A DNA stretch of 64,000 nt from Setoptus koraiensis (GCA_048013815.1 CM106585.1:6572001-6636000); one strand, 5' to 3'; numbered from the stretch's first letter, positions 3,588 through 32,325 are shown. A program made the numbers and translations. The notes: a model not told the origin generated them from the sequence alone.

Positions 3588-4421
<834 letters not shown>

Positions 4422-6924: not shown

Positions 6925-7270
6925 AAAGTTTCCAACCCAACGACCACTCATACACTGTACACTTATCTCATTTATATTAACATTCTCAAACGGATGATCT
7001 CAACACCAATATTTGGGTATTTTTGCCTGTGTGAGACACGTGCAGAAATTATATTATTACCGGCATACAACTACCGATAGAGTAACATTTAGACTTGATA
7101 CCGATTCACAGAAGATAGATCCAAGTTAGCCGACCAGAACATTCAGAGATCTCATGTACTGACGATTCATTCTTATCTTTAAGTGGTCTATTGTTGCAGT
7201 AATTATGTAATGAACATAACCATAAAGTAGGCTCACAAGGAGCCTTATAATTCATAATACATTCCAATCA

Positions 7271-8042
7271 TCAATCAGTTTTCAATTTAGGATATAGTTG
7301 TTTCTCGCAATCAACATAACTACAACGATTTGGATAGATTGAAAGTAACCGTGGATAGGTGTCTGCGACGCTTTTAGTGCAACTCAATGGTAATAAATTA
7401 TCCGGAATGTTATTTGACCGCTCATATTTGTAGTTGATATTAAAGGGCCTTAATGCCTAAATGTTCAACTAGTTCGTGAGCATCACAAGTATCGCCACAC
7501 ATTAACCATAGTGCGGGAGATTGCACTTGTGGGAATATTGCATTTTTACATGAATTAAATAGGGCCTGAATAAACTGTTCGCTTATGTTGTATTGAATTC
7601 TATCAACTGCAAATTTATTCTTGTATTTCGACCTGTCCAGTATCTGTATGAATTGTGCTTGGTTTGGGTTGCAAATTAATTGGCCAAACAGGCAAGCAAA
7701 ATTGACAAAACAAGACGGACAGGAACCCAATAGAGCCTTTGCCTGGGCCATTCCATCGATGAAATCGCTGATTTGTTGATTATTACAATAAAGCGGACTG
7801 TCTATCGAAACATTAAGTGATGGCACAAGAGCGTCTAATTGGTTTAGGAGGGAACCATTTTTAACTATTTGCGGGGGCCCGTCGCGGGTACAAGGAACTG
7901 GCAGGTCTCCTGTAGGCCCGGCAATTTTTCCACGAGTTTCGAAGCCCATGACACACCTGTCGGTGGCGGCGGCCTCACACAGTCGACTGCCCGCTACAAT
8001 AGCGGCTACGAAGCAGGTGATAATCAAATAGCGCCTATCCAT
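7271..8042 (-). CDS. NPC1 N-terminal sterol-binding-domain protein with signal peptide; frame 0 ends at 7440, and the rest of the domain continues in the +1 frame (7456-7271)
   Basis: Signal peptide MDRRYLIITCFVAAIVAGSRLCEA. NPC1-NTD motifs PLYC, LLGSCPSCFVNF, LICNPNQAQFI, ALFNSCKN and LMCGDTC. The +1 frame reads RPFNINY...LSCTKSV...RCSYVDC. Could be a frameshifted gene, a pseudogene or an assembly indel. Confidence 0.8.
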
Positions 8043-11000
8043 GATAGTATCTCGTAGTTAGTTCAGTTGTCGAGGTTGCTGTAGGTATCAGTTGTATAGT
8101 ATGGTGGCGGTAGTGGCGGTGGCAGCAATAATAGTAATCACAATGATCAATAGTAGCGAATTCAGTAGCAAAGTCAATAACTGCATCGGTAATAATATTA
8201 ATACAATGATCTATAATAATGGTAATTATACTAATTCTATTATCATACAATAAAAGAAAAATATGTTATTCTGAGTCGTCAGGGTGTCTCGAAATATTTT
8301 CTGCCATTTTTAGTATAAAACTATCAGTACATTGGCTCAGGAGAGAGTTTCTAGAGTTAAAAATCGATTCGAGTCTAGTGCCATACTATTTTCCAACATA
8401 CAGAAAGAGTATTGGTGAGAAAAAGAAAACGAGAAATTAATAAAACTATTTTCCGGATATTTGTCTCTTCAAGAGCCATCTGAAACCCTCTGAACGGGTA
8501 GATTGTTTATCGCTGAGGTTGATTAGATATGCTGAGAGATGGATACACGGATGTGACGTACATGCATGAAGAATAAATGAATTTCCAATTGCTCAGAGAA
8601 AGAAAGAGACAGTTTAGGTTGTGCTTCTTTTTCCTATTTCTCACTACTCGATAATTAAAACACATCGAGCTGGGATCAGGCACCAACAAACCCTAGCAAG
8701 CTTTCTAACGACCAATTAGGCCAACGGGCTCTAATATTCAGACTGGTATTGTGTGTTGCAGAGTCAAATCAGTTTGATCAACGTCACAGTCGTGTAATGA
8801 TCAAGTCTATTCAGTCGATATTATTATAGGTGGGTATTAAAACTAGCAGCTGCCAGTTGAGTAGATGGAAAACATATCACAATTTACTAACAACCTACAC
8901 ACGAATATGCTAACAAGGTAAAGAGACTGGCGGAATGAAGGAATAAAAACACATTTTGACTGTTGGACTTGTAAATATGGAGAGTTAGTTTCTCTATCAT
9001 CATCCTATATGGTTATGTAATATGATTTTATTAGATTAGGGAGCAACTATAATTATAATCATCATCATCATCATCATAATGATCATCAAGCACATGCAAT
9101 AGGCCAGTGATTTATATAGGATCATCAAATCAAATCAATTCGATTTGTTTCGAGCCATTTGATTTGGTTCAGTTTGGTTCGATTTGATACCCTCCAAAGC
9201 GATCAGTTTGACTAAGCAAGCTGGTCGGTATCTGTGATAGCCAAGATTAATTAGGGACCCACCATTTCAAGCTCAAGGTACTTGTTTTCTCAGGTAATTA
9301 TTTCTCTCCTCGCCTAGCATAAACAGGTGAAGTGAATTTATATCTAAATGTCTAAATGGAGAGATAAATCGACGATGCTGCTCATCATTTAATTGCTGGT
9401 TCTTAAAGCATTTGTTTCTATTCTGGCAGCCTGAATAGTATGAGTACGAGTATGAGTATGAGCATTAGTATCATGAAATGGACATATTATGCAACAACAA
9501 TATTATGCAAGTCAGACAAGCCAGATGCAAGATGAGAGAGAGAGAGAGAGAGAATGGTAGAGAATAAGAAGGAGAGAAATAAGGAAAAAATTTTCTTCTC
9601 ATGGGCGTGATGATTACGTGGCCGCATTAGTGGTGGCCGGCGGCTGCTACCACTTGCTACCTCTTGATCATCATCATCATCATCATAATAATCATCATCA
9701 TCATTACATAATTCTGCTCTTTTTGTGTTATTTTTTCTCTCAAATAAAGCTAAAGTGGATATTCATCTATATATTGGCATTCTCAACTATAATGGCGATA
9801 TTTGTATTACAAGTTGCTTGTAACGCTTGATATGTGAGAGATCAACAAAACACGATAGAGGCAACTAAACACAAAATAGATCAATGATGGTTATAGGCAA
9901 GAGAAAGTCGTTAGTTTATTTGTTGCAGATGATCGATTGATGTGGCATTGGGCAAGCAAGTTATCTCACCTTACAGGCAACTCTTATTATATCTCTTTCT
10001 TTATGTGATGTGATGTGCAAAAGTTGCAACGAATGGGCATGCATTACACAACTACACATACAAACAACTATTACTATAATTATCATTATTGTAAATGATC
10101 ATTACAGCTCACATCACAGCTACAGCCGGCTAACAAGAACGGTCATGCGAGTAACAACAACAACAGCAACAAGAAATTATTGTTATCTATTTGCATATTT
10201 GTTAATGTTGGCGCGCTGAGAATTGAGACAGGCCGAACTGAAACGATCCACTTTGTTGTACACTCACACAATGCACTGGCTCTGCCCAAATTATCACCTG
10301 TTGTAGCTAACAACAACAACAACAACAACTTGATCATTGTATCATTGCTGTCGGCCGGCCAAGCGCCTATATGCATGTGCCAGGCATAATGTATAATATG
10401 TAATATGTAATAATATAATAGGAACATTATTACAATTGTGCCAATATAACAGTTGCCAGCGGACAAGCTCGAAACGTGATCAGTTTGCTTGCAGCAATAA
10501 TTTAAAGTTAAGTAGGATCGTTGTTGCTGTTGTTGTTGTCGTTGTTGTTGTTGTTGCTGTTGTTTGTTACCTGGTTGCGACTGCCTATACAATGTATACA
10601 ATGTAATATATAATATGTAATGTGTAATACAGTGCGAGCGCTGGCAACTTCAAATAGAAACAAGAACAATTATTTAATTTTAAAGAGAATCATCATTATG
10701 ATTTGTTGCCCTCTCCGGCCACTGGCACCCCTTTTGGCGTGCACTTGTTGTTGCTGTTGCTGTTGCCGTTAAAGCAAACAAAGCTACTCGTTTTGATCGC
10801 TTTGGCCGCTTATCTCGGCCGCTCAATCTGAGCTGTGAGTCTGGCGATCTAGCCACTTGAGCCTCGGTGATTACATTGGCAATTTACAGCAAGCTCATTG
10901 CGACCCCATTCAATCTCGATCAAATCTAATTCGATGCGATGCGATTTGATTTGATTCCGTGCCATGATTGTGCGCCCACCCGACTCACAATCCGACGCAC

Positions 11001-12600
11001 ACAAAAACAACAACCAACAACCAACGAGACTCTGTTAGTAGTGAGCCTGGCGATCACTAAAACAAGCAAGATAATTGTAATAATAATAATGATAATCATT
11101 GTTAATATGTTGCAAAACAACATTGTCTAACTGACTCATCATCATCGTTTCTCATGCCATGACTCACAAGTCAGCTGGCGTGTTTGCATTTGGTTGCGCA
11201 ACTATAAAGCGTCGAAAAGGATCGGATTTTCGTATCGTTTTCTCATTATGTTCACATTATTTTCGTGTTATTTTCATATCATTTTCATGCTGTTTTCATA
11301 TCATCTTCACGCTGCGTTTGTATCGTTTTCACATGGTTGCTGCTCAGACACAAACAGGCTTGCAGAGTCGGCGAGACCGTCGTGATCATTTTATAAGTTT
11401 GCCGATGCAAGTCATGACCGTGATTTGTACGCCCAAACAACATTAGCATTTGTCTATTATTATTGCTGCCATCACTATCAACCACGACGCAAAATATGTT
11501 TCAATTTGGCTTAGCTTTATTATTATTATTATTATTTGCCATTGGCCTGTATATAGGGTCATTAAGATTATGATGATACTCGCTCGGGTCGTTGTTGTGT
11601 TGGCGCTCATTTATCATTTATCAGTATTCATGGTTGTTGTTGTTGCTGGCAGTTGCGATAATGATGATCGTGGAGCGGCACGCAATAACTCACAGTTTCA
11701 CTCTATAGGCCTCTCAAATTGAGAGTCTCGATCGACTGAATAGTCGCTGTATCAGCAGCCAACGACAGCAACAACAACAACAACAACAACAACGACGACG
11801 ACGACGACGACGACGACGATTCAGTTCGCTGCTATTTGCATAATGGAATGCGAATTATGAGCACAGTTGACAAGAGTCGATTAGTCGGATATGAGCAGCT
11901 GCTCGTCGCTGTTGCGTCGCTTCTTTCGCATCGAGCGCTCGCTTCTTTTCAATCAATCAAAACAATCAATGGCGCTCTCATCGGGCGCACTTGTCGGGCC
12001 GCCAACAGTCGGCGTGACGTCGGCCCGCCGGCCGACGCAAATGGCAGCCGGGCCCCAACCAAACACATTAGCATTTGCATGTTCATTTGTTGTTGTTTAT
12101 TATTGTCGCTTACACACGTTATTGATCATTATTATTGATTTGCATATTGGCGTCGCTGTCGCAGGTTGTTAGGTTAGCTTGCCGGCGCTGGCCGGCAATT
12201 GCCACAGAATGATTTATTATTTTCGATTGCTTTTTCACATGCTCGCATGTTTTGCATACACATTGTCGATTGTTTGCCATTACATTAAATACAATTACAG
12301 TTGGCCGGCCCGTCGGCGCCCAAACACTATGTACACATTTATTTGTTTGTATATCTATATATTCATATATATATATATATAACATTTATTTTTTACATGA
12401 TACAGGCGATAATGGGCGCGATATATCGGGCGCAATATCAATTTCAGTCAATCAATCAATTGGCACCAATGCGCCACCTATAAAGCTACTAGTCCAATTG
12501 TTGCTTGCCTATAATGGCGCTCCGAGCGCGCATTGTGATACAATGATTGCATGATAATATCATCGTTGTACATACAACAATATCGGGTAACTATAATATG

Positions 12601-14263
12601 TTACACGGGCGAGCAGCTCGACCGGGCCGACGAGGCGCCCGGCGAGCTGCTCAGCGAGTAGCGGGCCGCCTTGTTGGCGGAGTCCGTGGTGGCGGCGGCG
12701 GTGCCGCCAAGCTGCTGCTTTATGGCGGCGGCAGCTGGCGAACCGTTGGATAGTTTGGGCGACGACGCAGCCGACGACGACGACGACGACGACGACGACG
12801 CTGACTGGAACGCATTGCACGGTGCCGGCCCGCCCGACGGGCTACCAATCCGGCCCGCCGCCGACTTATGCAAATGAGTCAACGGCGAGCTTGCCGACTC
12901 ACGGCGCTGCTGCGGGCCCGCCCCCGCCAACGATGTCCCGTTTGCACTGCCCACTGACTGGTCCAATCCGTTCTTGTCCGCTGCGTTCGCTTGCGCACTT
13001 GCGCCGGCACCCGGCGCGGCCACCATTGGGGCGCCGCCGCCGGCGCCGCCACATCCGGTTCCGCCGTTGGCGGCGGCGGCGGCGCTGAACACTGCGGCCA
13101 GGTGCTGCGCGGCCAAACTGTGCTGCTGTTGCCCGGACGACATGCCCGCCCACGGGGGCAAACCCGACAGGCCGGCCAGTCCGGCGGGATCCGAGCCGCC
13201 GGCGGCCGCGAACGCGTGCGCCTGTTGCTGCGCGGACAAAAACTGGTGCGCCGCCTGCAAGTGCTGCAAATGATGGTGGTGGTGCTGCTGCTGCTGGCCC
13301 ATCATGTTCGGGTTGCCCGCAGCCATGGCCGCGGCCGCGCTCGCCATGACGGCCGCAAAGTCGGGCCTTGACATGTCTTCGCGCTGCTGCTGCTGGTGAT
13401 TGCGCGATTGAGCGGCAGCCGCGGCCGCCAGTGCGGCGTAGTGGGCCGCCAGCGCCTGCTGGCCCGCGCCGGCACCCATGGCACCTTGTGCGGCGCCCGG
13501 CGACAAGCCCGCCTTGGCCGGCTTGAAGTCTGCGTGACCGGGACTAGGGGGCGTGGTGGTCGGCGGTTGCTGGCGGCCGGGCAAGAATTGCTGTTGCTGC
13601 GGGTGATGCGGTTGCGGGTATTGCGGTGGCGGCTGATGATCGGGATTGTTGTTGTTGTTGTTGGTGTGATTGAGTAACATTGGATGGTTTGCGGTGTTCG
13701 GTGGTGCGTGTGGGTTCATTGGGTGCATGTGCGCAGGCCCGTTGTGCCGTAGCGATTGCGATGACTGGTGCGCGGGCGCGCCGGGCAGCGGCACCGCCGG
13801 GTTGTTGTGCGGTTGTGTGGGCGGGGGCGACATCGACGACGACGACGACGGGCCAAAGGGCGAGCCGTTGTTGTTGGCCGGTTGTTGCAAGTGGCCGCTG
13901 TTGTGATTGGCGAGCGTGGGCGTCGTTGTTGGACTAAGCGCGTTGTTGTTGTTGTTGTTGTTGCTGTTGTTGTGTCTGGCCAATTGCGATTGTTGCAAAT
14001 TGTTGTTGTTGTTGTTTGCGCCGTTGATGGGGTGACTGTGGCCCAGTCCGTTGATTAAATTAGTACCTAAATGATGATGATGATTGTGCATGCCGGAAGC
14101 GGCCTGATGATGATGATGATTGACGTTGCCGAGCGGGCCGTAGGGGGGCGCGGGTGCCTGCTGGTGCGACGCCGACACCTTGTTGACAAATTCCGACTGC
14201 AGCGACATCATCAATCTGGTGGCCTGTTGTCGCTCTGTTTCCTGTTCCTCGGCCGTCTGGCGC
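12601..14263 (-). CDS. C15: Tlx/C15 last exon (conserved Tlx tail plus Q/N/H/A/S-rich region)
   Basis: CTGCAG|G CGC CAG ACG GCC GAG GAA continues KWR into RQTAEE. Open for 554 codons to TAA at 12603-12601. Confidence 0.9.
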
Positions 14264-17200
14264 CTGCAGCGGGAGATAAAATATGGGGGCAAACAAATGC
14301 ATTGTGTGAGTATGGTTTTGTTACGTCAACAAGGTTGTATTATTTGTTACGTAATTGCGCGAGTTGGCCAAGTATGACAAGTTAATATGCGCAATGATGA
14401 CGACGGTTAATATCGGCACGCGATTCAGTTGTTGTTGTTGAGCTGTCAGTCGAGCGACGGCGACACGGCGAGCCATTTTATACGAGCACTTATTTTGCCG
14501 TTATCGCGTCGCATCGGGGCCCCCATTGTCGCGACTGTCAATTGCGCGCGCGTGCCGAGTGCAGCGGGCCCCAACGAGGGCAAAAGAGCGCCCCAACGTG
14601 GCCCAAAACGGGCCGTCACCCCTTTTGGGCCCGGCAAAAGTTGGCGTCGGAACGTGTGAGAAGCAATTACCGCGATAACATCTCTGGCTGCGTGGCCCCA
14701 TTTTTGGCTCGCCTCGTCGTCGCATATCGCCGCACCGTTATGCGCGACCTTGTTTTTGGCCGTGCGCCCCCGTGTCACACGGCCAACATTGTCTGATTTA
14801 AATCAGTGCGACACGTACGCCCGGTGTGACGCACTGACAGCTCTCACGCGAGCCCGCTGAGCCGCTGTCAGGCGGTCGGGCGAGTGCGGCCGCGGGCCGC
14901 ACTCGCCCGGGCTCGCACAGACGGTGCGATCTCGGTCTGGCGGCATCGAGCGGGATTTGGCGGATCTGACGGGATGGTCGCGGGATCTGGCGGCCGCGCA
15001 GCGCACGGAACCATATGGCACAGTTGCGAGCGCGGTGAGTTGCGCCGCGGTGACGGGGTGCCGTTTATAGGCGCTCGCTGTGAAAGATGGCGCTTGCTTC
15101 GAAAAGATGGCACTTGCTGTGAAAAGAGTGCACTCGCTTCGAAAAGGTGATTACAGGCCATGTTGACATTGCGCAACGACGGCAACGAGTAATGCGGCAT
15201 TAGTAGTAATGGTTGCGTAATAAATTTGCGCGCTCGAGGCAGCAACAACTTAAAAGTCGAGCTGACAAGTTAAAAACGACGGTTAAAAGGCGATGATTAA
15301 AAAACGACGATAATCGCACAATCGCCCAGAACGAATGCGCGAGAACGAGAGAGAGAGAATACGATAGAGCGACGAAAATAGGCTGCCGAAATGGGCCCGA
15401 AACCGGCGAAGTTGCCTGATTAATGAAATATCATTTTTGCATCGTGATCGTTGAATCGTCGCCGTTCGAGCGTCGCAACTATTAAAAGCGACTCATTCAT
15501 AAATTATCAATCATTAATAATTAATTACTGCTAATGGCGATGTCGGTGACCTTAGCCAGCGTGAGCACTTGCGCAAACAACAACTTGCTGTCGTTGTTGT
15601 CGTCGTTGTTGCTGTTGCTGTCGTTGTTGCTGTCGTTGTTGCTGTCGTTGTTGCTGTCGCTGTCGTTGTCGTCGCTGTCGGCGGCTGCGACGACAACAAC
15701 AAGCCGAAAATGTTCGGCTTTTGACACAACGCAAAACTTGAATCAACTTTAATAGCGGCTCTTAATTGCAAATGGCTGTTGCGCCGCCACTAACAAGCGC
15801 GCCGGCAACTACGACAACCACGCCAACTGCGGCATCTATGGCAATCGTGAATGGCAACTATAAATGGCGCTATTCGATGCATTATCTGAGATTATCTGGC
15901 TGATGAATAGTGGAAATACGGTGTTCATCTGGGCACTATAACTATGTAATAACTATATAATAACTATGTTATAACTATACAATAACTATACGATAACTAT
16001 ACAATAAATGCTAAGACTATAATAAATGAATAAATAATAAATGAAGAGCGCCTATAGATGCAGTGACAGCGGCTAATTGACGCCGAACAGCAGACGAGCA
16101 CATGTCACAATGATACGTCACAATGATCATATGTCACAAGGGCGGCACAATTAATTGACGAGCTCTCCATCTTTGTCTCATTTGGTGTATTTATGTTTAT
16201 TTTTATTTACAAGTCGCTCGCTGGGGCGACTTGTTCGCTCGGACGACTCAGGCGCGCTTGCGTTGCAATCGTTAGCGGCTCTGCCGGCTTCCACGACAAA
16301 CCCGCTAACGACACTTAATTTCGACCAACACCGACACCGACGCCGCCGTCGAGCGCCATCGACCGACTCACGCTGACGGGACCGAGCGGCGGGACGGGCC
16401 GGCGCGCCGGAGCGACGCGCCGGGCGACGGGACGGGACAGAGCGACGGGACAGGGCGCCCAATTGAGAGCCCGCTGCGCTAGCTAATTGAGCTAGTTGAG
16501 CTAGTTGAGCTTGTTGAGCTTGTTGAGCTTGTTGAGCTTGTTGAGCTTGTTGAGCCTGTTGAGCCAGTTGAGCTGGCTGAGCTGGCGAGACGCGATCGGC
16601 GCAACTCGGCGAGCGGCGCACGATTGAGAGATATTCAGCGGCGACAATTGCGATTGCGCTCGGATCGTTTGAGTTGAGCTGTCTCACGCTGGCCGTTGCG
16701 AGGCAAGCGTGTGATCGGCGGGCGATAAAACATGCCAGATTTGATAGGCCGAGATTTGATAGATCGAGAGCGGCTGAGAGAGCGGCTGAGAGAGCGGCTG
16801 AGAGAGTGGCGAAAAGCAGATAACAGCGCACGAAACGAGCCCGTCGACGGGCGCACTCGACGGCGGCAGCGCCGAATTAAAAGTTGAGACGGCGGCAGTT
16901 GCGCGCCTGTCGACGCTTCGAATGCCAGCTCGGGCTTCGAATGCCAACTCGGCGCTTCGGCAGGAGAACCCGGCGCGAACTCGAATGCGAGATTGCGGGA
17001 CTCGCTTTGATCGCCAGCCATAAACTGTCAAACGAATGCGCCGTGTCTCAATGAACTGGCCCGAGCGGCAAGTAGCTACTGCCGACGCTGACAACGACGA
17101 CACCGACAACGACGACAACGACGACACCGACAACGACGACAACGACGACACCGACAACGACACCGACAGCGGCGCGGTGACAATCGGAGCACAGTTACTC

Positions 17201-18146
17201 GCTGCGCCGAAAAGAAGCGCCGAAAAGGGCGGCCGCCATTTTGTCATCTCGGGCCTGGCAGCGCCACTAATGAGCGTCGATTATCGTCAATTAATAGTAA
17301 TAATCGTCAATAATGCGCCGTGATTTGGGCCGACCGCTCTTAATTAAGCGCCGGCTCAATTAAGGCGCTCACTTATTAACTCTATAAATATCGGCCATGT
17401 GAATATCGCTTGTGTGAATATCGCCTGTGTGAATATCGCTTGTGCGAATATCGCTTGTGTGAATATGCGCCGTGTGAATGTGCGCCACGCGAGTATTGGC
17501 CGTGTGAATATCAGCCTTGCAACTAGCATGATGCGAGTGTCGGTGAATATCGAGCTCGCGACAGGGGGCGGCCTTCGAGTGTCGGGCAAAGTTTCGGGCG
17601 GCGCGCAAAGTCGAGCAACGACGTCAACGGAACACGTGAGACAACCTCGACGCGAACCTAATGATCGGCCGCTAATTAAACGGCTCCCTTTTAAACGTAA
17701 CAGCGACCAGCAACAACAATCAAACAATTAAGCACTTGAGTAATTAGATTGCCCATTGGCTGGCGAGTGTTCGGGAGCCATGAGGGTACTTGCGCAGTCG
17801 CTCGTTCTTCGCTTGCCCGCGAACGTTCTTTGCTTGCCCGCGAACGTTCGCTCTCGTCGAACGTTCGCTCTCGTCGAACGTTCGCTCTCGTCGAACGTTC
17901 GCTCTCGTCGAACGTTCGCTCTCGTCGAACGTCCGAACGTTCGCTCGTTTGTTTGTTCGTGCCTTTCGCTTCGTTTGTCCGACTGTCCGTCCGTCCGTCA
18001 TGGTGGCGCAAGCATGATGGTAGACGCAACAGCGGCACTAATAGCGGGCCCATTATGCGCTATTAGTAGCGCACTTATTAGCGCATTACGGCCGCCGTCC
18101 ATTACACACGCCGTAGACACTCGCCAGGTAGCTACCTGTCGTTTTC

Positions 18147-18198
<52 letters not shown>

Positions 18199-21100
18199 CT
18201 GTTGCGCGTTAGTTGATTATTATTGCTGTTTATTACTAATTACGGCCATATCTGGCCAATGGCCGGCTGACCGGTGGCCAGTTGCGCGCAAAAAGCCGCC
18301 GATGGCCGGCTATTTATTAGCCTATCTATTAGGCACTGGCCAGTGGCGCTCGTCCGCCGCCCGCTGCCACTTGGCGCAATTGGCCTCTAATGCATCGACT
18401 GATGCGCATATAATGATAGTATCATTCTCGTATCTGTTGTATGCATAATGGGCATGCGAACGCACATATAAACAGATATACGCAAACAGATGAACGCAAA
18501 CAGATGAACGCAAACAGATGAACGCAAACGGATAAACGCAAACGGGCGCCAGCGCGCAAGTAGCCGATATAAACACCTCGGCAATTTGTAGCCAATCATG
18601 TGGGCCGCTCCAATTGATGGCGCACTCGTTTGTCTGTCCAGTGATGGATAATCCATCAGCGGGTGCGTTTAATTTAATTTCGTTTGGCCAACGGTTGGCG
18701 ATGCTTGTCGCAGCCAACGCAGCAGTTTATTAAATTATATCAAATCAAAGCGCGCGCGTCAATTCGCGCTCATCGAAAAGCGCTCATCAAATTAAATCAA
18801 AATTGAACGGCAGCAGCGCCGCCAGAGCCTCGGGCCTCACTTTCATGCAGGCTCATTATGTTGTCTATACATAATGTGCGACTCGTTCAAGTGCACACAT
18901 GATTTGTTGCAAATCATCTAATTATCCTATCTAACAACTTGATCGTCGTTGTTACGATTGCATTTGTTCACCTTGCCACTGGTTCAATTCGCGAGTCAAG
19001 GCCGCCCAAACGAGCCATTCTAAGAGCGTTTCCATGGGAACGCTCTGGCAACACTTCCCAGCCTCTTGTCTACCCAATGTGAGGGCGTGAGTGCTCAGTG
19101 GGCACCCGTTCGGCTGCCGTCCGCTGAACAGTCGGGCCGGATACCCCCGGCCCGAGCGTTCAGCGACATGGGCGACAATCAATACTGAGTGTGTTGCGAT
19201 CACAGCAGCGACATGGCAAGCCGACGCGATGTAACGGGGTCATTACGTTGCGAATCATTATATTAGAAATTGTCGTGTTAGAAATATTCATATGAGAAAT
19301 TGCAAAGTTGAGAAATTTTCACAGTGGAAGTTGCCAAGTTTGCAAATTTTTCTATCAGAAATCGAGGCAGTCAGAGAGCCCCAAACTGCCAAACAAGAGT
19401 CGGCGCTCGGCGAATATCCGGATAAACGCAACGCATTCACTCGACTAACGGTAGGCAACAATGCGCACGTTATAGGACTTGGTAGGCATTTAGTTTAATT
19501 GATAATGGTCTAGTTTAGTTTTCATTGCTATAGTACACAGTTGTTTGTTTGGGTGCGCTGGTCACCAGCGGTCGATCACCGACGGTCGATCACCGACGGT
19601 CGATCATCGACTGTCAGTGAACAATAACAAGGTAGCAGACGGTAGCTTTAAACAACGAGCGAGCTGTCACACGACGCTCAGGTGAACAACTGTCAAGCGT
19701 CTGGGCAAACAAGGCAACTGTCAAACGTTTAGGTAAACAACGCAACTGTCAAACGCTCGTCAGCTGTTCACCTGAACTGCTGGGCAAGTCGCTGGCGCAT
19801 AAAGTGCTCGGCGATGGCTTGCAATCTCATTTGGTGCTCTAATAGTTGCTGCTGATTAATATCTCTACCGCTGGCCGGCTGCACTGTCGAGAGATCATTT
19901 GCATGCGATGACGTAATTAATTCCTGCTGCTGCTGTTGCTGCTGACAATGATGGTGCCGCTGCTCGTGATTAACCGAATAATCAGCTGTTTGGCTTGAAT
20001 GCGTGTGATGTCCGTGGTGTGGCGGCACTTGTGGTTGGGCGCTAGCTGCACTTCCGGTGATGGCGGCCAATTGTTGAGCTGCCTGCAAAAAGGATCTGTT
20101 TTGATTGTTTATAATGTGATGTTGTTGCTGCTCCAAAATACTGTTGCTGTTGCCTGAACTGGTGCGCTGATTGTGATTAATTGATGACACAGGTGATATT
20201 GAATTGTTTGCATTTGTTGGTGTCACCGATGGCTTGCTCATTTGCATTTGGGTAGTTGCGTCATTTTGCGTCATCTCTGTTGCGTCTGTGTGTGCCTGTT
20301 GTGTCTGTTGTTGGAACAGTTGGTAACGATCGTATTGATGGCTGGCTGTTTGCACGTCATCGTCGCTGTCGTCTAGCTCGTCAGATTGATCGGCCAATAG
20401 ATGCTGCTCGTGTTGCTGTTGATGATGCTCGAACAGGTCGGATAAGTGGCCCTCACTCATGTTGTTCAAATTCAAACTACCGCCGCTACTGCTGTTTATC
20501 TGGTACGAGGTGCGCCTATAACACCGAGTGGTCACAAAAAACATAAGTCACGCACACACACACACACACACACATCACAAGTCACATAATTGCATAATAA
20601 TTATTAATTAACGGACACCATCAAACAGACAGGTGAGTCATGGATTGTTACGCAACAATTGTTTCGATTCGTTCGTGTAGTGTTAATATCGTGCGCGATA
20701 GCGCAAAATAGCCAATAGCCAATAGCAAACGAGGCGCCACAGAGCGACCATGTTGCGGCGTCGGCAGCGACATCGACATCAGCGTCGGCAGGCAACGGGT
20801 GAGCGGGCGGATGGATGAGCCGAGGGGCGGGTGAGCGGACGGACGGACCGACGGATGGGCGATCGGGAGTGATGGGGGCGGGGGAAGGGATAAAAACAGC
20901 AAAGAATTAGCTAACTACTACTGATAGACTGAAATACAAATAATACGCGCAAGACGCAAATGACAGCCACTAGATGGCCAGTTGTGCCGGCCGGCAGCGC
21001 TGATTGCAATCGTTACATAATGTGGCCAACATTGCCGATTGTGGCCATTACATAATGTGGTCGTTACACGGTTGCGTCATTTATGTCGCACGACCATTGC

Positions 21101-24100
21101 CGCTGCAGCTGCTGTGACAGTTTGCGGCTGTCTCGCGTTTCTTCTGGTCGGCTCGTCTGCGTTTGTCGGCTGTCATCGTTATGTCATCATTATTTACATT
21201 TATATTTTCTTGTTTATCGGCGCATCTCGCCAATTAGTGGCCACTCGACGTCGCCGCTGCGACAGAGGCGCAATTGCGATGACGCAATCGCTTCGCCCGA
21301 CGGCCGCCAATCGATCGGTGGACGAGTGCACGGACAAGCGTGCCAACTAGTGCGAATTAGACGAGCAACTGGTGCGGCCATTTGTGGGCCGCGATGCGCC
21401 CAGCGAACGCAAACAAGTCACTCAAGCTCGCCGGGCCAGCTCAACGAGATCGGGACGGCCGATGAAAGGCCGCCCGTCCGGCCGGTCGCTGTGTCGCGTT
21501 CGTTGGCTGCCGCTGCTTCGCGGCTAAATCCGCGGCCGCGGCCGCTCCGCTCAAAGAGAAGCGAGGCCAGATCGGCGGCGCGATAACGCGCCTCTTATCT
21601 TATCGCGCATGAGAGCCGTCGGAATTTGAGATCGGCGCGTTAATCGTCGGCGATGACGGCGCTCACAGGCGCTCGAGCGCCATTCAATGTGACACCTCTC
21701 GCACAAGCTCTGAGTGGGGCTCTGAGCGGGCCGGCTCACCTGGCGCTCACCGTGACTCCCGACGAATATCAGCGGATCTCGGCGAATCTCAGCGAATCTC
21801 GGCGAATTTCAGCGGATCTCAGCGACAAACGGTGCTCAAGCGAAAGTCCGACCGATCGCGGCGGCAAGCACGTGATTGGACGGAGATAATCGACGGCCGG
21901 CCGGTACAGCGGCCGATCGCAAGCGAGTCAATACAATTTAATTCGAGCCGAGTCAATACAATCAAATTGATTTCTCAATTCAATCAACACAGTCAATAGA
22001 TTTGATGAGCCATTACGAGCGCTAATTCATTAATTGAATGCCCAAATCAATTATTAGCGTCGGCGTCCAGTGGCCAGTTGATTGCCGCCAGTTAGTTGGT
22101 TAGTCGGTTAGTGGCCAACGATGGCCAACGATGCCAAATGATGCCAAATAATGGCTAAATGGCTAATAGCAACGACAACACTAATATGCAAATGGGCCTC
22201 TCATAAGTGCTCACGGGCAGTTTGATGAAATTTAATGAAGTGGCAGTAAAAAATTAATGGTTGTTGTCGTTGCTTTGGCCGCCGCGCTCAACCATTTCAT
22301 GATGATCGCCGTCGCCTCGTTTGATCGTCATCGCGCGTCACCGTCGGCGCCGCCGCATGCAAACTCGCCGTGAGACGCCACCGGCCCGCTCGTAAAGCGG
22401 CCGCAACCGCTCGCTCGCTCGATATTTAATGGCCCGTTGACCGCTCACTCGCCACCGACCATTTGATATTTGACCGACTGCTTGATATCTGGCCACTGGC
22501 CAGCGCAAAAGCCAGTTGATAGATGGAGGTCATGATGGCGCGCCGCAACACACAAACGGGCTACCTGAAACAGGAAGTTGTCGCGGCGCCAAATTTAAGC
22601 TGCGCGTTGTTGTTGTTGCAAATGGCCGCGATTGATTGTTGTTGTTGCAAATGGCCGCGATTGATTGTTGGTGTTGTTGTTGCAAATGGGCCACGATTGA
22701 ATGACAATTGAATGGTGCACGAACGGCCGGCGCACAGAGCTATAATTAACGATCATTATCACTATTTGGTGGCGCTGGTGGCGCCACTGTCAATCAAACG
22801 CTAAAAAGTGACGCCGCCCCGCGAAACAGGTGAGTGGCAACAGCCAGCGAAATCAAATCGACCCATTAAATCAACATTATTGTTGTGCGCTCAAGTGGCG
22901 GCCATTGTTTCAAATGGTCGCAATCAATTTAAATTATGCCCGGCTGCCGCTCGGTCGAGCCGGCCCGGCCTCTGGCCGGTCGAGCGGGCCCGGCCGCGCG
23001 CGCTCGGGCTGTGTGCGGAGTCTCGATTAAATCGGCCACGATTGAATCGCGGGCCTGTTAGTTTTGATGGGCGAGCAATTCGCCAATTGGCCACTTGTTT
23101 GTTTTATCAATCAATTGTTGTTTGATTTGAATGGGCCGCTGCCATTCAAACGCAAGCGGCAACCGGCCGCTGACCCGACGCCGACCGACGCCGCTATCGC
23201 CAGCAAACACTGACAGCTCACGTCATGTGTTTTGGCGCGCCGTGTTGGCCGGTCGTTGCGGTCGCTTGTTGTTGCAATGAATGGACGCTCATCTCGTTCA
23301 AATTATTATTGCTATTATTACAATATTGTTATTGTTGTTGCAAAGCCCTCGCCACTGTCAACCTGTTGCCTGTCGCGGCCAACTGACAGCTCACAGCTGA
23401 TCTCTGGCCACTGACAGCTCACAGCTGATCGCGGCCACTGAGCCTCAGTGACTGACAAGTGGGGCGCGCGCGCACAGCTGATCTCGGGCCGCTGACTCAC
23501 GGCGCACAGCTGATCGGCTGACAGTGGGCCGACTGGCGGCCATGTTAAACAATATCAGTCAACATCAGACAATATCAGACAATATTAACGAGTCGCTATT
23601 AGTCGCCGCAACTGTCAGTGTCAGCTGGCCGAGCCGACAAGTGCGTCGGCGCCGTTATGGGCACTCGCTTATCTGGATAAATCTCGACGCGCCGAGATGC
23701 GCCGAGATGCGCCGAGATATAGACACAAGAGCGGGCACCGTGGTGGCGCAAATGGTGTTGCGGCTATCGACACGCCGGCCGCGAACAATGGGCGCGAAAG
23801 CGACCGTCATTCATTATTGTTCTTGCGACTCACAAGTGGCTCGTCGGACGTTTGAGAAAATTGAGCGGCTTGAGAGGCTTGAGAAGTTGTCGGCCGGCCA
23901 ACGCAAGGCCCGCGAAGCCGCAACAACAACACCGACAAGCACGACACCGGGCACAGGTAGCAGGTAGCAGGCAGCTTGCGTGCAGTCGGCGGCGCTGGCA
24001 GCAGTTTGTGGGAAGAGCGGCAATCAAGCGGCCAGCCTAATTGCGGCTCACGTTACACAACAACAATGTCCTGTTGCCACATGACAGCCAGTTGTTGTTG

Positions 24101-25111
24101 TTATATTATTATGTAACAACACAAGTCAGCCTGTGGTGAGACAAGCTGACACAGGTAATAAGTGGGCAGATTATCTCACGTTTAAGTGAGATAATGCCAC
24201 TCACTTTAAGCGTTCACCTGTGCTCGCTGGCTGCCACTGTCCGGCCGGCAGTTACGCAACGCAACGCGACGCGTACAAAGCGCCAGCTGCAAATTGCAAA
24301 AATTAAGCGCAAATTAAGTTGTATCAATCAAGTTGGCCAAATCAGGTTGTTGTTGTGGTTGTTGCTGCTGCTGTTGTTGCGCTCACCTGTTGTTACATAA
24401 CACGACATGACAACGGTGAGAAAGTCGCTGGCAAGTGTCGGCGGCCACCGCAACAGGTGAAATAATTAGCTCATCGTTGGTGTGCGCTCAACAAACCAAC
24501 GGCTAACCGGCGACACAAACGAGCCAACCGACAACCGGTGCCCACAATTAGCGCACCACATACTGTACTATGACACTGTGATGGTCTAATACTATAACGA
24601 CATAATATAACATAATAATATGATACTATAATGATATAATAACATAATGCCAGAATAACACGATGATTTAATGCCAGAATGATGTAATAACGAGTATAAT
24701 GTGCACATTGTGGCACAAATATACAAAACGCAAATACAAATTCACACAAGCGAACGCATGAATATAAAACAAAATATAACACAGATATGCAAATGCACGC
24801 CGGCCGGCTAAACGGGCTTACAAGTGGTTTTTGGTTTCATCAATTAGCAACAAGTTAGTGGCACAATGAGCGGAGCCACTCACTTGCGTAACATGTTGGC
24901 CACTGCAGTGTGTTGTTGTTGTTGTTGTTGTTGTTGCTGTTGTTGTGGTTGTTGTAGGCCGATGTCAATGATGATCATGCAAATTACAATTAGCCGTCCA
25001 CCTATAATGCCAGCCATTACCGCTAATGACTATTGAATGGATGGGCAGCATTATTATTATTATTAATTTGCCACTCTGTTGCTGGCGATTGTTTGTTGTA
25101 CTCCCACTCCG

Positions 25112-25154
<43 letters not shown>

Positions 25155-28100
25155 AATAATTAATGTTAGTGCACATGTCAGACAGCTTGTCAGGTGAATG
25201 GCACAGGTAACGAGGAGCGATGTGTAGTAACAGGCGATTGTCACACAACATTTGCCGGACAATTAGCCGATGGTTGCGCTGAGTCGATCGAGCGATTTGA
25301 GCGCCGCCAACGAGTTGGTCATTGTCGAGCGCTAATTGGCCGGCGCTGGGAACCACAGCAACAACAGCAACAACAGCAACAACAGCAACAACAGCAACAA
25401 CAGCAACAACAGCAACAGCAACAGCAACAACGACAACAGCAACAACGACAACAGCAACAACGACAACAGCAACAACAACAGCAACAACAACGCTAATTGA
25501 AATGAATCGACGCTCAGTGGTTAGAGTCGAGCGTCGTTTGTGTTGCGTTTGTTAAAAACACAACCAATTTGCTGTAAGTGGGCACAGGTAAGTGGTCAAT
25601 AGTGCAAATATAGGCCAGCGGCGCCATTACCGGCGCCGCTATTAGGGTTACATGCGGCGCTTAATTTGAATATTTATTAGCTAACAGTCGGTAGTTGGCC
25701 GTATTTGGCCAACAACCGCGCCGGTGAATAACGGACTCGCTTAATTGATTAGCTGCGCTCGGCGTGTTGTTATTGGTCGCTAATTTCGCCATTCGTTTAG
25801 CGCTAATGACGCCAATACACCGCTCACCTTGCCGCGTCTGTCTGTCCGATTGTCTGTCCGTTTGTCTGTCTGTTTGTCTGTCTGTTTGTCTGTGTGGCTC
25901 AGTCAGTTATCGCTCCGCTCACCTGTCTATTCGCTGGCAAGCTGGCTGTTTCTTTGCGCGTCCGCTAGTCGGTTGATTGGCCCACGTAACGGTAAACTGG
26001 TGGCTATTTGTTGGCGACCAGTTTGCCAACAAATTGCCCTGAGCCACTTGGCTCGGCAATCGACTCACGCCGGCGCAGCGTATGCACGCATCGACGATGG
26101 CGCCCTCTCTCTCTCTCTCTCTCTCTTAGGGGCGCCCTCTCTCTTAGAGGCGCCCTTTTTCGCTTGGAGGCGCCCTATTTCGCTGAGGGCTCTGTGGCCC
26201 TGTGAGAGGCACCCGTTCGGCCTATAAACGTACGCTGGTGGCGACCGCGAGGGGGCCCCTGCGTCGTGCTGTTTGTTTGCGGGCTGCAGCGGTTTGCTGC
26301 AATCACGGCCCAAATCGGCCTATAAAGCGCGCCTCTGGCTGTCAGTGCGCCAGAGTTGTGAAATAGGCAATGTTACGCAACGTAACTACCAAACGTTATC
26401 GCACACATTGTGTGCGCCTAATGATGCTGCCATTTTCGCTACATTGAGCAGCGAAAATGTTGGCGAAAATCGGCGAAAATCGGCGAGAATCAGCGAGAAT
26501 CAGCGAGAATCAGCGAGAATCAGCGAGAATTGGGCCGAAAATGGCGCAAAAGTGCGCCCCATCTATCATCTGTTTGGCGCGCCTCGCGTAAGGTCGGCAA
26601 AATCAATTTTGCGTGCCGTTGCGTGCTCCAAAATCACGCCGCCAGATGTATGAATATATTATTTCGCTCATGTTATATCATGTTATATCATGTTATATCA
26701 TGTTATAGGCGCCGGTGTTGCAATGATTTAGGGCGCAATTGCGTAACGTGTTGCCCGTGTTATGCTGGCGTTGCAACGGCCCGGCCGGCCGGCCCAACGA
26801 TTCCCGTCGGTGCACCGGCCCCAATCATGTGCGGCCGCCGCCGGCGGCCGGGCCGGCGAGCACGCGAAGCGGCCAACATTTAGGCGAGTCATTTAGTCAA
26901 TTTGGCCGAATGTGTAATTGCCGAAATTAGTCGTGCCGACCGACACTGGCGGCCAGCACGCCCCTGGTCGCCAGTGGTTCATTTGCATACGTTTGCCATC
27001 ACTGTCACTATCAGCGTCATCGTCGCGAGCGCGCAGCCTATAATTTGCCGTTGTTGTTGCTGCTGTTGTTGCTGTTGCTGCTGTTGTTGTTGTTGCCGCA
27101 GTTGTTGATGTTGCTGTTGTTGTTGCCGCAGTTGTTGATGCTGTTGAGGTTGTTGTTGTGGCTGTTGTAACGACATGATACATGCGATACGTGCAAGCGC
27201 CAGTTTAGATTAGATTAGACGCAATTGGATCAATTGCGGCGAATTGGAGCGCGCCATTGGCCAGCCGTATGCATGCAAATGGGCCCAATCCAGGTAAACG
27301 CCAGGTAAACGTCGGCCAAGCACCGGCTAAACGTCGGGCAAGCGCCGGGCAACGGCGACAGCTTGCGCACGTAAACGGCGACGTGCCCGATTAAACGGCA
27401 CAAGCTAGTGCGCTGCTCGCCGGGCGGCCCGTGCGCGTCGCCTCAAATGGGCTAAATGAGCCGCTAATGAGTTGTGACGGCCCGGCTGACACTCCGTCCG
27501 GGAGCGGCCCGCGGGCGGGGGCGTGCGCCGCCGATCGCTCGGTAATGGCGGTCGCTTAGTGTGCGCCTATAAAGCACCTATGCACGCCCCGTGCGCCGCG
27601 CAACAACCTCACAATAACTGTGCAAAAACCTCACAACAACCGCGCAACAACCATACAACAACAGCGCAACAACCGCGCAACAGCCTCACAACAGCCTCAC
27701 AACAGCCTCACAACAGCCTCACAACAGCCTCACAACAACCTCACAACAACTGCGCAACAACCATACTACAACCACACAATAACTGTGCAACAACCTCACA
27801 ACAATCACGCCCGTTGTAAGACGGCAGCGACAACAGCGTGAGATGACGCTGTCATTGTCTTTGCTGCTCCATTTACTTTGTGCGTGCGTCTTAATTGATG
27901 TTGTCGTCGTTGTCGGTGTTGGCGAGCAGCGAAACAAGATGCAAATGACGCCAATGACGAACGGGCGGCCGCCTATATCGCTGCGCGGCGCGTACCCGAG
28001 CGCACACCTACGGCGGGCCGTCGGCCGAGGCGACATTTGGCTGGCGCCGGGCGCTGCGGAGCTCGCAATCGTCGGGTATCTTGGTTCTCACGATGGCGTT

Positions 28101-31067
28101 TCGAGGCGAGAACACGACTCACACTGGACATTTCGTCTGAGTCGTCCGAGGCTGGCTTCGCTGGGTATCGCGCGCCGGCGGATAATTGTCATTGCGAGTG
28201 CGTGCCAGCCACCATCACAAGAGCGGCGCAAGATTGGCCGCGGACCGCGAGTCGCCGGTCGCTGGTCACTTGTTTGTTCGCCGCTGTCGGCCCGTCGAAG
28301 CCGCGAACTTACCTGGCGAACTTACCTGGCGAATTCACCCGGCGAATTCACCCGGCGAACTTACCTGGCGGACTTACCTGGCGAAGCGCCAGTGACACAT
28401 TGTGTCCATTAGCAGCACGACGCTCCCGCGGACGAGCAAACGAGCAAATGAGGACACAAAAACAAAGCTGGGGGCGGGGACGGGTAACTCGGGCATGTCG
28501 TCTAAGTACTGTTATTTGCATGCTATTAATATATCGTTATTATATATCGTCATTATACGTCGTCGTTACACGTCGTCGTTATACACGCTCGTTGTTTATA
28601 CGTGACGGGCTCATTGAGCGCCGCTCACATGACGCATCGGGTCCGGCCCGATGAGTGTCGGCTAATTATTGGTTAGCGGTGGCGGTCACTTGAAAGTCGC
28701 CCCACAAACACACTGACGGCAAATGCGCCGATAAATATACGGATAAACGCACAGGTAAACACACTGACATTCGGGTATGAATACGCTGACATTCGGGTAT
28801 GAATAGGCTGACATTCGGGTATAAATACGCTGACAGTCGGGTATAAATACGCTGACAGTCGGGTATAAATACACTGACTTGGGGTATGAATGTACTGACA
28901 CTGGGGCGTAAATATACATGTAAACGCGACATGCACACCGTGCGTCTGTTTACAAACAAACGCTCCCGTCCGCGGACGAGTCGCTCGCGCGGCCCGACAG
29001 CCGGCCCGAGCCAGCGCCGACGCCGCAGATCGCCGCAGATCGCTGCAGATCGCCGCAGACCGCCGGCCACCGTCGGGCCGGCCAGACGCGGCCAGTTCGC
29101 GGCCAGTTCGCAAACAGCTGAAGGTTGACTTTTGGCGACACGCGCTCGTGTCGCGTTAATTTGTTATATTTGCCGTAAGTTTGCCTTTTGTAACTAATTC
29201 GCGCTATCATCAGTGCTCAAAGTGGCCAAGGTCTAGACACGCCAAAGTGGCAATTAGTTGTTCATGCTCCGCTTGCGTCCCGGCCGCCCGCTCCCGGCTC
29301 GGCGGCGCCCGCCGCCGACTCGCGGCGGTGCGCTTGTTGCGGGAGCTGGCCTGTTGCGAGAGTGGGACTGTCGTGAGGGCTGGCCTGCCGAGCGTCTGGC
29401 CGAGCTGCGGGCCGGACCGAGCAACCGGAACAAAGCCGGGCAAAAAGTTAGCTCAATGAAACGAGAATGAGTGAAAATGAACTTACCTCCATTTGGTGCG
29501 CCTGTTCTGGAACCTAATTTTGGTTGCGGTGCGTCGTCGATAGCGGCACCCACACGGCGGGCCGGTATCATTCATCATTGATGACGCAATTGTTTCAATT
29601 GTCATCGTTGTCGTCATCGTTGTCGTCATTGGTCGGCGTCCAGGGTGGTTGTTGGTTTTTTGGTAATTAGGTGCAAATGGCAAATAATTGCCGAGTGCAA
29701 GTGCCGAGAGAGAGAGAGAGACAAAGCGATGATTAGTGGCTGAGCGGTGACATGATGAGATGATCGCATTATTAGATCATATTATTATTACATAATCGGA
29801 TAATGAGCATGATGGGCACAATGAGCAACTTACCAGGTCTTCACTTGGGCGTCGGTCATTTTGAGATTCTTGGCCATGGAGACGCGCTCGGCCGAGGCGA
29901 GGTACTTTTGCTTGTGGAACCGTTTCTCTAGCTCGCAAATCTGTTGCCTAGTGAACGAGGTGCGCGGCTTCTTCCGCTTGGGCGGCGTCCTGTTCTGGTA
30001 CGGGTGCCCGATGCGCCGGGGCACCACGAGCGAGCCGGGCCCGGCGCCCGCGTGGAAGGCGTGCAGCGAGTGGAAGGGCACTGACAACATAATCAAAATG
30101 TTTAATTATCATATCGGGCTATTATCATATACAGGCTAAAGTGGGGCACGGGCTGAGTGCGGTATGAGTGGGGTATGAGTGGGGTATGAGTGGGGTGCGA
30201 GAGACACTTACGGTGGGCCAGGTTGAAGGGGTGACCCGCGAGCGGATGGGCGCCCATCGGGTTGAGATGATGGGGCGCCTGTTGGTGGTGGTGGTGGGCG
30301 TTGGCGGCCGCAACCGCCGCGGCCATATTGTTAAGCGCGTTGGCCATTGATGTGGGCGAATGGTAAGGTGACTGTTGTTGTTGCTGTTGTTGTTGTTGTT
30401 GTTCGTGCGATTGTTGTTGTTGCAAAGGTAGCTTGTTGTTGTTTGGTGGTGCTTGCATCAATTGATTGGCCTCAGACGATATAGGCGAGTGATTGATGTG
30501 GTTGTCGCGCTCTGTCGCGACGTTGTTGTCTGAATTGTTGGCGCTGCTTGCAGTCAGCTGATTGCTGCTAGTTGAGGCACTCTTGTGGATGGATCTGCTG
30601 TTGCTGTTGTTGTTGTTGCTGTTGTTGCTCTTGTGGTGCTTGGCTGATTGTTGTGTCGATGTCTTCAATGACATGGGGTGATGATGATGCGACAACAGAT
30701 TAGTGTTGATGTTTATGTTGTGATCGTGATGATTCAATATGTTGTAGACGCTAAATTTAAGCTGCTGTTCCGTCTTGGAATCGTCTAAATTGTTTAAGTT
30801 ACTTGCCTCTAGAGCGGCGGACTCGTCGTCGTCGCGCTGCTCGTCGTCGTCGTCGTCGTCGTCCGACTGGCCCTGATTTGACACTGAGCCCTCTATTGAT
30901 GAGCACATCGACGAGGCCCGCGAGCTAGATCGCGACGACGCGCCAGCGGGCGACAACGGATCGTCGGCCTGCCGGTTGTTGTTGCTGTTGTTGTTGTTGT
31001 TGCTGCTTGTGTCGTCTTGATCGTCCTCGTTCGACATGGGCGATGGCGAACGCGCTGCTGGCCTCAT
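12601..31067 (-). CDS. C15: Tlx/Hox11 (C15) NK-class homeobox transcription factor, 4 core exons, about 930 aa
   Basis: Exons 31067-30212, 30080-29834, 29513-29487 and 14263-12601, all GT-AG and in frame. [22 protein letters not shown], homeodomain with Thr47 ([13 protein letters not shown]), Tlx tail [22 protein letters not shown], and eh1-like FSVYNIL in exon 1. Confidence 0.92.
17398..17510. repeat. 15-bp minisatellite (GTGAATATCGCYTGT), about 6 decaying units
   Basis: Tandem units read directly, inside the Tlx large intron. Confidence 0.85.
17841..17932. repeat. 17-bp minisatellite CGAACGTTCGCTCTCGT, 5 copies plus a partial
   Basis: Five identical units, each containing the palindrome CGAACGTTCG. 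Confidence 0.95.
19768..20515 (-). CDS. Candidate alternative (cassette or terminal) coding exon of Tlx/C15
   Basis: TTATAG|G CGC ACC phase-2 acceptor. Stop-free 248-codon Q/H/S/N-rich frame ending TTC AG|GTGAAC (phase-2 donor at 19771) or reading on to TGA at 19770-19768. Confidence 0.6.
25354..25490. repeat. Compound CAA/CAG/GAC microsatellite
   Basis: ACAGCAACA-type units read directly. Source of spurious poly-Q and poly-T ORFs. Confidence 0.95.
28303..28385 (-). repeat. 13-bp tandem array carrying splice-donor consensus CAGGTAAGT (4 perfect, 2 variant units)
   Basis: Plus strand GCGAACTTACCTG x2, GCGAATTCACCCG x2, GCGAACTTACCTG, GCGGACTTACCTG. Confidence 0.95.
28765..28890. repeat. 22-bp minisatellite (ACGCTGACAKTCGGGTATRAAT-like), about 5 units
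   Basis: Tandem units read directly. Confidence 0.85.
29487..29513 (-). CDS. C15: Tlx/C15 27-nt microexon (recognition helix, [10 protein letters not shown])
   Basis: AAATTAG|G TTC CAG AAC AGG CGC ACC AAA TGG AG|GTAAGT, phase 2 at both ends. Confidence 0.93.
29834..30080 (-). CDS. C15: Tlx/C15 exon 2 (homeodomain helices 1-2 and start of helix 3)
   Basis: Acceptor TTGTCAG ends at 30081 and donor TG|GTAAGT starts at 29833. Encodes [63 protein letters not shown]. Confidence 0.95.
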
Positions 31068-31970
31068 TTCGAGCAAACACTGACTAATTACCAATCACTG
31101 ATTACTGATTACCGATTGACGACAACTGATCACTGATTGCTGATTGCTTATAATTGATCACTAATCACTAATTACTGGCTGCTAATTACTGATTGATGCC
31201 GCGCGATGTGTCGCAATATGTAAATATGTATGTGAGTATATTGCAAATATAGGCGATTTGTCGCTTTGCTGACTGGAGACTGCGATACTGTGCCAATTGC
31301 AACTGAGATGTGCGATATAGGCCAACTGTCGAGCTTGCCGATTAACTGTTGAGCGAAATGGCTCGTTAATTGAAATCTTGTTGTTGTTGTTGCTGTTGTT
31401 TATATTTGAAACAATTATGAGTAACAGCAATTATATCTTGTTGTTGTTGTTGTTGTTGCTGCTGTTGTTGTTGCTCGTCTCGTCTATGAACTCGGTGTGC
31501 GTGTGTGTGTGTGCGCAAACTTGACTGACCGAGTCAGTGTTGCGCGCTGTCACTGCTGGCAACTCTGACGCGCAGCAGTTCTTGGTGGGTCCGCGAGGGC
31601 GGCGCCGCTTGCTTGCCGAATGCGCCTTGTTGTGCCTCCATTGGCCATAGACAATTGCTTGGTAAATGTTTGTGTTGTGCGTTGCACTCGAGACCAACAC
31701 TTACACTGTGTCGCACTGCTTACAAGCCCACTGTTAGTTGCGCGGCCAGCGCTCCTGGTGGTGGTCGCGCAAAGCTTCGACGAGAGTGACGCCAGTCATT
31801 TTATAACTAGTTGCGGAGCTCACTTAGCGCACACAGACTGATGCGCAGACGGGCGCCAGTGTGCATGTAAATTGGTTTGTGCGCATTGTAAATTGTTGTT
31901 ATATTTATCTACTCAAGTGACTAATGTGTTTTATTTAATACGTATATATATATACACATTAAAGAGCGAT

Positions 31971-31980
31971 TGTGTGTGTG

Positions 31981-32033
<53 letters not shown>

Positions 32034-32046
32034 GTGTGTGTGTGTG
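31971..32046. repeat. (TG)n dinucleotide microsatellite
   Basis: Nearly pure TG tract with two TGCG interruptions. Confidence 0.97.
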
Positions 32047-32325
32047 TCTCGCTAATGGTGTGCCAGCGTTGCGAGCGTCGCCTAGCGTGCGTGCCGCCAA
32101 CTAGCAAAGTGAAAGATGCAAATTGCTACAAATGGCCAATCATCGTTATTGGCGCCACACGGTGCACACTATTAAAATAATTGACCGACGGCAAGTTGCC
32201 CGATGATAACGGTAATTGGCGCGTATGCGCTTTGGTCAATCGTCGACAGTGTCAGACGACGTCGATATAGCAAAGACTCGATAAAACAAATCGAATTATC
32301 ATCTTGAGGCGCCTATAAGACGATA

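Follow-up and report, generated by a model that had tools for sequence, protein, structure and literature searches.

A 248-codon open frame lies within the last intron of a Tlx/C15 homeobox gene of Setoptus koraiensis, and the question raised by this locus is whether the frame is an extra exon of that gene, a separate gene nested in the intron, or intronic DNA that is open without having a function. We addressed this question in a window of 64,000 nucleotides (GCA_048013815.1, CM106585.1:6572001-6636000), and all positions given here are counted from the first letter of that window. Judged from the DNA, we see an even chance that the open frame is a lineage-specific, unannotated Tlx/C15 coding exon, used as a cassette and/or as an alternative (composite) last exon.

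The genomic setting bears on this question in two ways. The published Setoptus koraiensis assembly has an N50 of 24.53 Mb and two chromosomes, and its gene models come from ab initio and homology-based prediction, without RNA-seq (PMC11920263); the genome searched here comprises 48.76 Mb in two contigs. The same paper describes pooled Illumina reads of more than 100,000 wild mites (SRR32458739-41), with a heterozygosity of ~1.1%, and a MAKER/BRAKER annotation deposited in Figshare. Eriophyoid genomes are intron-poor and most of their genes are intronless, as stated in a passage of PMC11879100 that cites Greenhalgh et al. 2020. Thus, one would not by default expect elaborate alternative splicing in such a genome, and a gene consisting of a single open frame would be in keeping with it.

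The host gene and its last intron

The window has a sharp compositional break near position 12000. Positions 1-12000 (37-41% GC) hold compact, largely intronless housekeeping genes (PRORP, TIM, MBOAT and NPC1-N), while positions 12000-64000 (50-60% GC) are laden with microsatellites and hold Tlx, an ABCG-type transporter and a rhodopsin-type GPCR. The exons of this second block carry long Q/N/S/H runs. Neither Lbx nor another NK-cluster gene was found beside Tlx within the window. The Tlx gene is composed of the following exons:

30212-31067, minus strand: first coding exon with an eh1-like motif; donor C/GTAAGT, phase 1 (a slash marks a splice junction); start ATG approximate
29834-30080, minus strand: homeodomain exon, ending in ...AQVKTW; donor TG/GTAAGT; Pfam Homeodomain (PF00046), E = 9.4e-15
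29487-29513, minus strand: 27-nt microexon with phase-2 junctions on either side, encoding the FQNRRTKW-R of the recognition helix in the homeodomain; donor GAG/GTAAGT
12601-14263, minus strand: canonical last exon, cag/G CGC CAG ACG GCC GAG GAA (R-RQTAEE); stop at 12601

The host gene shares with Tlx, C15 (clawless) and TLX1-3 a homeodomain of the NK-like class, the Tlx-specific flank of this domain, an intron directly after FQNRRTKWR, and an RQTAEE tail that opens the last exon. The RQTAEE...ERQQA..RL tail is conserved in vertebrate TLX and in other phyla. In an alignment with "T-cell leukemia homeobox" proteins of ticks and dust mites, the Tlx-specific flank and the ...AQVKTW core were invariant; the alignment also took in many unnamed exon ORFs, and the core was invariant in these as well. 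Many of the aligned exon ORFs from animal Tlx genes stop directly after FQNRRTKWR, which argues that the position of the last intron is ancient.

By contrast, the placement of the recognition helix on a separate 27-nt microexon (G TTC CAG AAC AGG CGC ACC AAA TGG AG/gtaagt) distinguishes the host gene from known Tlx genes and is common to only a few Logan contigs of apparent relatives. The intron that splits the homeodomain between W48 and F49 is ~320 nt long here and has no equivalent in the aligned Tlx exon ORFs of ticks, dust mites and others, which run through this point. Three Logan proteins, recovered in a search with the homeodomain exon, end in ...KTW as the host exon does, and in the contigs that encode them the same microexon follows after another 70-170 nt; the W48/F49 intron thus measures 70-170 nt in contigs of SRR29668662 and SRR3100146-51. 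In one of these contigs, L002, the microexon is recovered with 95% identity over 43 nt (L002:515-557), and L003:1466-1501 likewise matches it. Thus, the W/F intron is common to some relatives.

The second difference from known Tlx genes concerns the last intron, which measures ~15 kb in a genome of only 48.7 Mb and which ends at a canonical acceptor with a strong pyrimidine tract before cAG. The candidate ORF is located ~9 kb into this intron and has no counterpart in the Tlx proteins searched. The initial annotation had noted that no exon of this type is known to have been described for C15/Tlx, and a limited, shallow literature search likewise found no paper describing one.

Geometry of the candidate exon

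The candidate exon and the elements around it are as follows:

19772-20515, minus strand: candidate exon, Q/S/H/N-rich and non-tandem; 744 nt, corresponding to 248 codons in the cassette reading
20514-19771, minus strand: the 248 open codons
19771-20547, minus strand: stop-to-stop open stretch of 259 codons, with an ATG at 20544
20516-20550, minus strand: putative 3' splice site, with a branch-like cttat ~30 nt upstream and a T-run
19763-19774, minus strand: putative phase-2 5' splice site CAG/GTGAAC, lying on AGG TGA in the read-through frame
19768-19770, minus strand: TGA stop that would be used if the donor were left unspliced (alternative last exon or independent gene)
19494-19499, minus strand: ATTAAA, the nearest poly(A)-signal-like hexamer, ~270 nt past the TGA

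The initial annotation had proposed that the candidate begins with AG/G CGC, exactly as the canonical last exon does, and joins the microexon in frame, and both the coordinates and the phases bear this out. The acceptor context reads ...ggtgttatAG/G CGC ACC TCG with the first exon base at 20515, the tatAG is the sole AG after the branch-like cttat motif, and an in-frame TGA at 20548-20550 shuts the candidate frame 11 codons upstream of this AG. The opening four bases, G CGC, are the same in the candidate and in the canonical last exon; as a consequence, homeodomain residues R57-R58 (Arg-Arg) would be retained in either splice form. At the other end, the sequence reads CAG TTC AG/GTGAAC with the last exon base at 19772 and the GT at 19771-19770, so that the phase-2 end at 19772 and the overlapping TGA at 19768-19770 are present as described. 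Because 744 equals 3 x 248, the cassette is symmetric in phase 2, and its two ends match the phases of the 27-nt microexon and of the canonical last exon on the same strand, in agreement with the cassette geometry proposed for 19772-20515.

All 248 codons are open and their sequence is non-tandem; Tandem Repeats Finder places no array within the candidate exon. Each of the remaining five frames has 10-16 stops across the same interval. A search of its own 48.7-Mb genome recovered the candidate as a single copy, and its amino-acid composition is similar to that of the other Tlx exons, as the claimed Q/H/S/N-rich likeness implies. Duplication of another Tlx exon was rejected as its origin, with BLASTP E-values of 5.9 against the last exon and 8.1 against the first exon.

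The putative donor is weaker than the donors of the host gene. It matches the U1 consensus from -3 to +4 and mismatches it at +5 and +6, where it lacks the G and the T of GTAAGT, the sequence present at each of the three canonical Tlx donors. The TGA that overlaps this donor had been taken as a sign of an alternative C-terminus. We do not uphold this argument because phase-2 GTRA donors always read into TRA; in other words, the stop comes automatically with the donor and carries no independent weight. The donors of the homeodomain exon and of the microexon likewise read through into TAA. The ATTAAA at 19494-19499 is not significant either, as hexamers of the AWTAAA type have a background of ~1/kb on the gene strand of the intron.

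Codon composition and boundaries of the open frame

A frame of this length could be open without being used. In this reading, the candidate would be a non-functional open frame in A/C-rich, CAR/AAY-rich intronic DNA, perhaps decaying or proto-genic, and the AG and the GT at its ends would be coincidental; we consider this possible, if on the doubtful side. It draws on the abundance of long open frames nearby, since the GC-rich, presumably non-coding parts of the window contain 11 other ORFs of 190-274 codons. Dinucleotide shuffling of the candidate gave 6/20000, and several of these 11 non-coding ORFs are equally improbable under shuffling. We therefore dropped ORF length and shuffle significance as an argument. 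The many long non-coding ORFs arise here because repeats keep frames open, and with ORF length unexceptional, any excess over chance rests on codon composition and boundaries.

To evaluate the codon composition of the candidate, we derived a codon model from the 6408 codons of 11 genuine GC-rich ORFs, of which the ABCG and GPCR ORFs are Pfam-confirmed. Under this model, the codon log-likelihood ratio (LLR) of the candidate is +0.197 bits/codon in its own frame and drops to -0.11 and -0.33 in the two shifted ones. Leave-one-out scores of real exons range from 0.01 to 0.25. Elsewhere in introns or intergenic DNA there are 59 ORFs with 120 or more codons, which have a mean of -0.23 +/- 0.21; the single one of these that reaches the candidate is a plain N/S trinucleotide repeat. 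Compared with its own dinucleotide shuffles, the candidate has a z of 7.1, and the non-coding ORFs have values from -1.4 to +3.8. The intron contains 171 open stretches with 50 or more codons; by score, the candidate ranks first of these and is the sole non-repeat among the leaders, the runners-up being simple repeats.

Simple N/S or Q repeats are able to mimic the codon model, which is a point in favor of a non-functional frame, and two further scores speak against this explanation. With the Q/N/S/H codons dropped, the candidate retains a score of +0.088 (real exons, -0.12 to 0.14), while the non-coding ORFs fall to a mean of -0.42 and only one of the 59 attains the candidate score. Under an independent AT-rich housekeeping codon model, the candidate scores +0.048 and exceeds all 59 non-coding ORFs, the maximum of which is -0.076. 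One or more real GPCR exons are probably hidden in the non-coding set, since a middle part is missing from the Pfam coverage of the GPCR; this makes these comparisons conservative.

Other measures are less favorable to an exon. The synonymous-only score of the candidate (0.028) is at the bottom of the real-exon range (0.014-0.16) and inside the non-coding range, and its GC3 of 0.52 equals local GC, whereas the canonical Tlx exons have a GC3 of 0.66-0.87. In addition, 39% of the candidate lies in 8-mers that recur within it, which would suit a non-functional frame. In favor of an exon, this repeated-8-mer content of 0.39 resembles the 0.3-0.5 of real low-complexity exons. The weak synonymous bias, the GC3 value, the weak donor and the frequency of long non-coding ORFs all count against a Tlx exon and are what a non-functional frame would lead one to expect. 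A caveat of another kind is that the features of the candidate were chosen post hoc, by a reader seeking exactly such a pattern.

The boundaries of the compositional signal were examined along the minus strand. The T content is 13-21% inside the candidate, 33-37% just upstream and 32% just downstream (180-nt flanks), and the frame-specific LLR per 180-nt sub-window is positive throughout the candidate and negative outside it. Thus, the codon composition is exon-like under two models and is confined to the proposed exon, and the limits of the T-poor compositional island are those of the proposed exon. The candidate also ends in CAG/GTGA; endings of the CAG/GTRA type occur in just 5 of the 546 ORFs with 100 or more codons (at most 1%). 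That the island stops at the proposed splice sites, that it does so with this ending, that it contains no internal tandem array and that the five other frames are all interrupted argue against a non-functional frame.

Coding-like composition would equally be expected of an independent, intronless orphan gene that lies within the Tlx intron in the same orientation as Tlx, has its own promoter and is not spliced to Tlx. The ORF is indeed complete, from an ATG at 20544 (258 aa) or 20460 (230 aa) to the TGA, and it would conform to the largely intronless gene structure of eriophyoids. Immediately upstream of the ORF, an AT-rich run on the minus strand (20584-20610) contains TAATTA-type, homeodomain-site-like motifs (taattaataattattatgcaattatg) and is followed by a (TG)n microsatellite (20551-20578, minus strand); together they may act as an enhancer or as a promoter element, or may have no role at all. 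The ATTAAA 270 nt downstream also fits a gene of its own. The boundary data point the other way: the first 10 codons after the upstream ATG are T-rich and resemble a pyrimidine tract, unlike the remaining ORF, and the compositional shift occurs at the AG and not at the ATG. Moreover, a nested gene would leave it to coincidence that the ends resemble splice sites in the right phase and that the start, G CGC, is that of the canonical last exon, exact-product look-ups of both starts (in records excluding the own genome and near relatives) returned no called gene, and the product has no signal peptide, domain or homologue. We consider a nested orphan gene unlikely.

An extra Tlx exon is the most economical account because it brings together the composition, the island boundaries, the phases, the CAG/GTGA end and the shared G CGC start.

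Homologues, predicted products and known systems

Searches with the candidate ORF identified no relatives, a result that a non-functional frame would also give; here and for the other Tlx exons, each exon was searched individually. Phmmer against 1.84 billion representatives gave 0 matches, a word search gave 393 candidates, none with E <= 10, and a JGI metagenome scan gave none. Pfam returned sub-threshold noise only, and an ESM Atlas search (recognition 1000, matches at most 0.80) was uninformative. A search with the canonical last exon for full-length orthologues had no result because low-complexity words dominated it. The Logan contigs of the nearest relatives are 1.5-3.5 kb long and end within 3 kb of the microexon; the 3 kb of last intron in L002 contain neither a long ORF nor similarity to the candidate. 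Between these nearest relatives and the host gene, only the homeodomain core is common, and the sequence just N-terminal to it is already unalignable. Since the relatives are too diverged, the contigs too short and the low-complexity flanks unalignable, the lack of a homologue carries no weight.

A single-sequence AlphaFold model of the ORF has a mean pLDDT of 52 and consists mostly of coil and helices of low confidence; a single helix, at 221-247, is modelled better. The predicted model fits a disordered regulatory tail and proves nothing.

If the candidate is an extra Tlx exon, its products can be envisaged as follows. The perfect microexon donor AG/GTAAGT (29487) would be spliced to tatAG/G at 20515, and the homeodomain would be completed with the same Arg-Arg (AG/G CGC) as that provided by the canonical last exon. 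Approximately 246 residues would then be added; these are Q/S/H/N-rich and predicted to be mostly disordered, and they include a patch of acidic residues and, at the C-terminus, a predicted amphipathic helix. If the weak donor CAG/GTGAAC (19772) were used, the exon would be a symmetric cassette between the homeodomain and the RQTAEE tail. If it were not used, translation would stop immediately at the TGA, giving a Tlx isoform that lacks the conserved tail, i.e. a composite internal/terminal exon. We infer the use of these splice sites from their sequence and phase, and a swapped or enlarged transcription-regulatory tail would be a plausible function. A more far-reaching version of this scheme is that a young, disordered exon of 248 residues was captured at the most ancient Tlx intron position, directly past the recognition helix, in a highly streamlined animal genome, copying the first codons of the canonical exon, and that its weak donor allows Tlx to be made with the tail, with an insert before the tail or without the tail. 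We put this version forward tentatively.

Alternative C-terminal isoforms of homeodomain factors that arise through cassette or composite terminal exons are well known, for instance Pbx1a/1b. In the secreted and membrane forms of IgM, a composite exon has a weak donor that competes with a poly(A) site, and in the classic composite-exon layout, a weak 5' splice site leads to an immediate stop when it is not used. The predicted Tlx isoforms would resemble these systems in that only the regulatory tail is exchanged or lengthened and the DNA-binding domain stays the same. However, the candidate is an orphan low-complexity exon with no conserved domain and an insignificant poly(A) signal. A second comparison is with orphan genes nested in introns and with low-complexity exons that are lineage-specific or arose de novo, and the candidate is similar to these in being without homologues, disordered and Q-rich, with one predicted helix and a weak synonymous bias. 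It differs in that its ends fit the splice phases of the host and its first codons copy the start of the canonical exon, neither of which a free-standing de novo gene would need.

If the extra Tlx exon is real, Tlx/C15, a deeply conserved factor in limb-tip and heart patterning, would have gained a large, species-restricted regulatory tail with its DNA-binding domain untouched. Alternative splicing would thus survive at a developmental gene in a genome that lost most of its introns, and a gene model built from ab initio and homology-based prediction alone would be corrected. If it is not real, the locus is a warning that repeat-rich, GC-rich mite introns hold many long ORFs. In either case, the result is a testable exon prediction and not a new kind of system.

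Several further features were noted in the surrounding DNA. The GC-rich non-coding DNA around Tlx (14330-29480, 31100-40600 and 44910-53300) is full of short tandem repeats, with 69 Tandem Repeats Finder rows in the Tlx intron alone, and the 11 ORFs of 190-274 codons with clearly non-coding composition are a trap for ORF-based genome reading. Between the microexon and the candidate, positions 28303-28385 consist of 6.4 tandem copies of a 13-nt unit (plus strand, GCGAACTTACCTG); on the gene strand, this array reads CAGGTAAGTTCGC and presents six perfect CAG/GTAAGT donor-like sites within the Tlx intron. Lastly, the rhodopsin-type GPCR is split (55923-58261, minus strand), with the upstream ORF covering positions 1-62 of Pfam 7tm_1 and the downstream ORF positions 151-260. 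This split coverage indicates that at least one exon for positions ~63-150 lies in the intervening 2.3 kb, and the ORF at 57821-58189 has the least negative codon score between the two GPCR ORFs.
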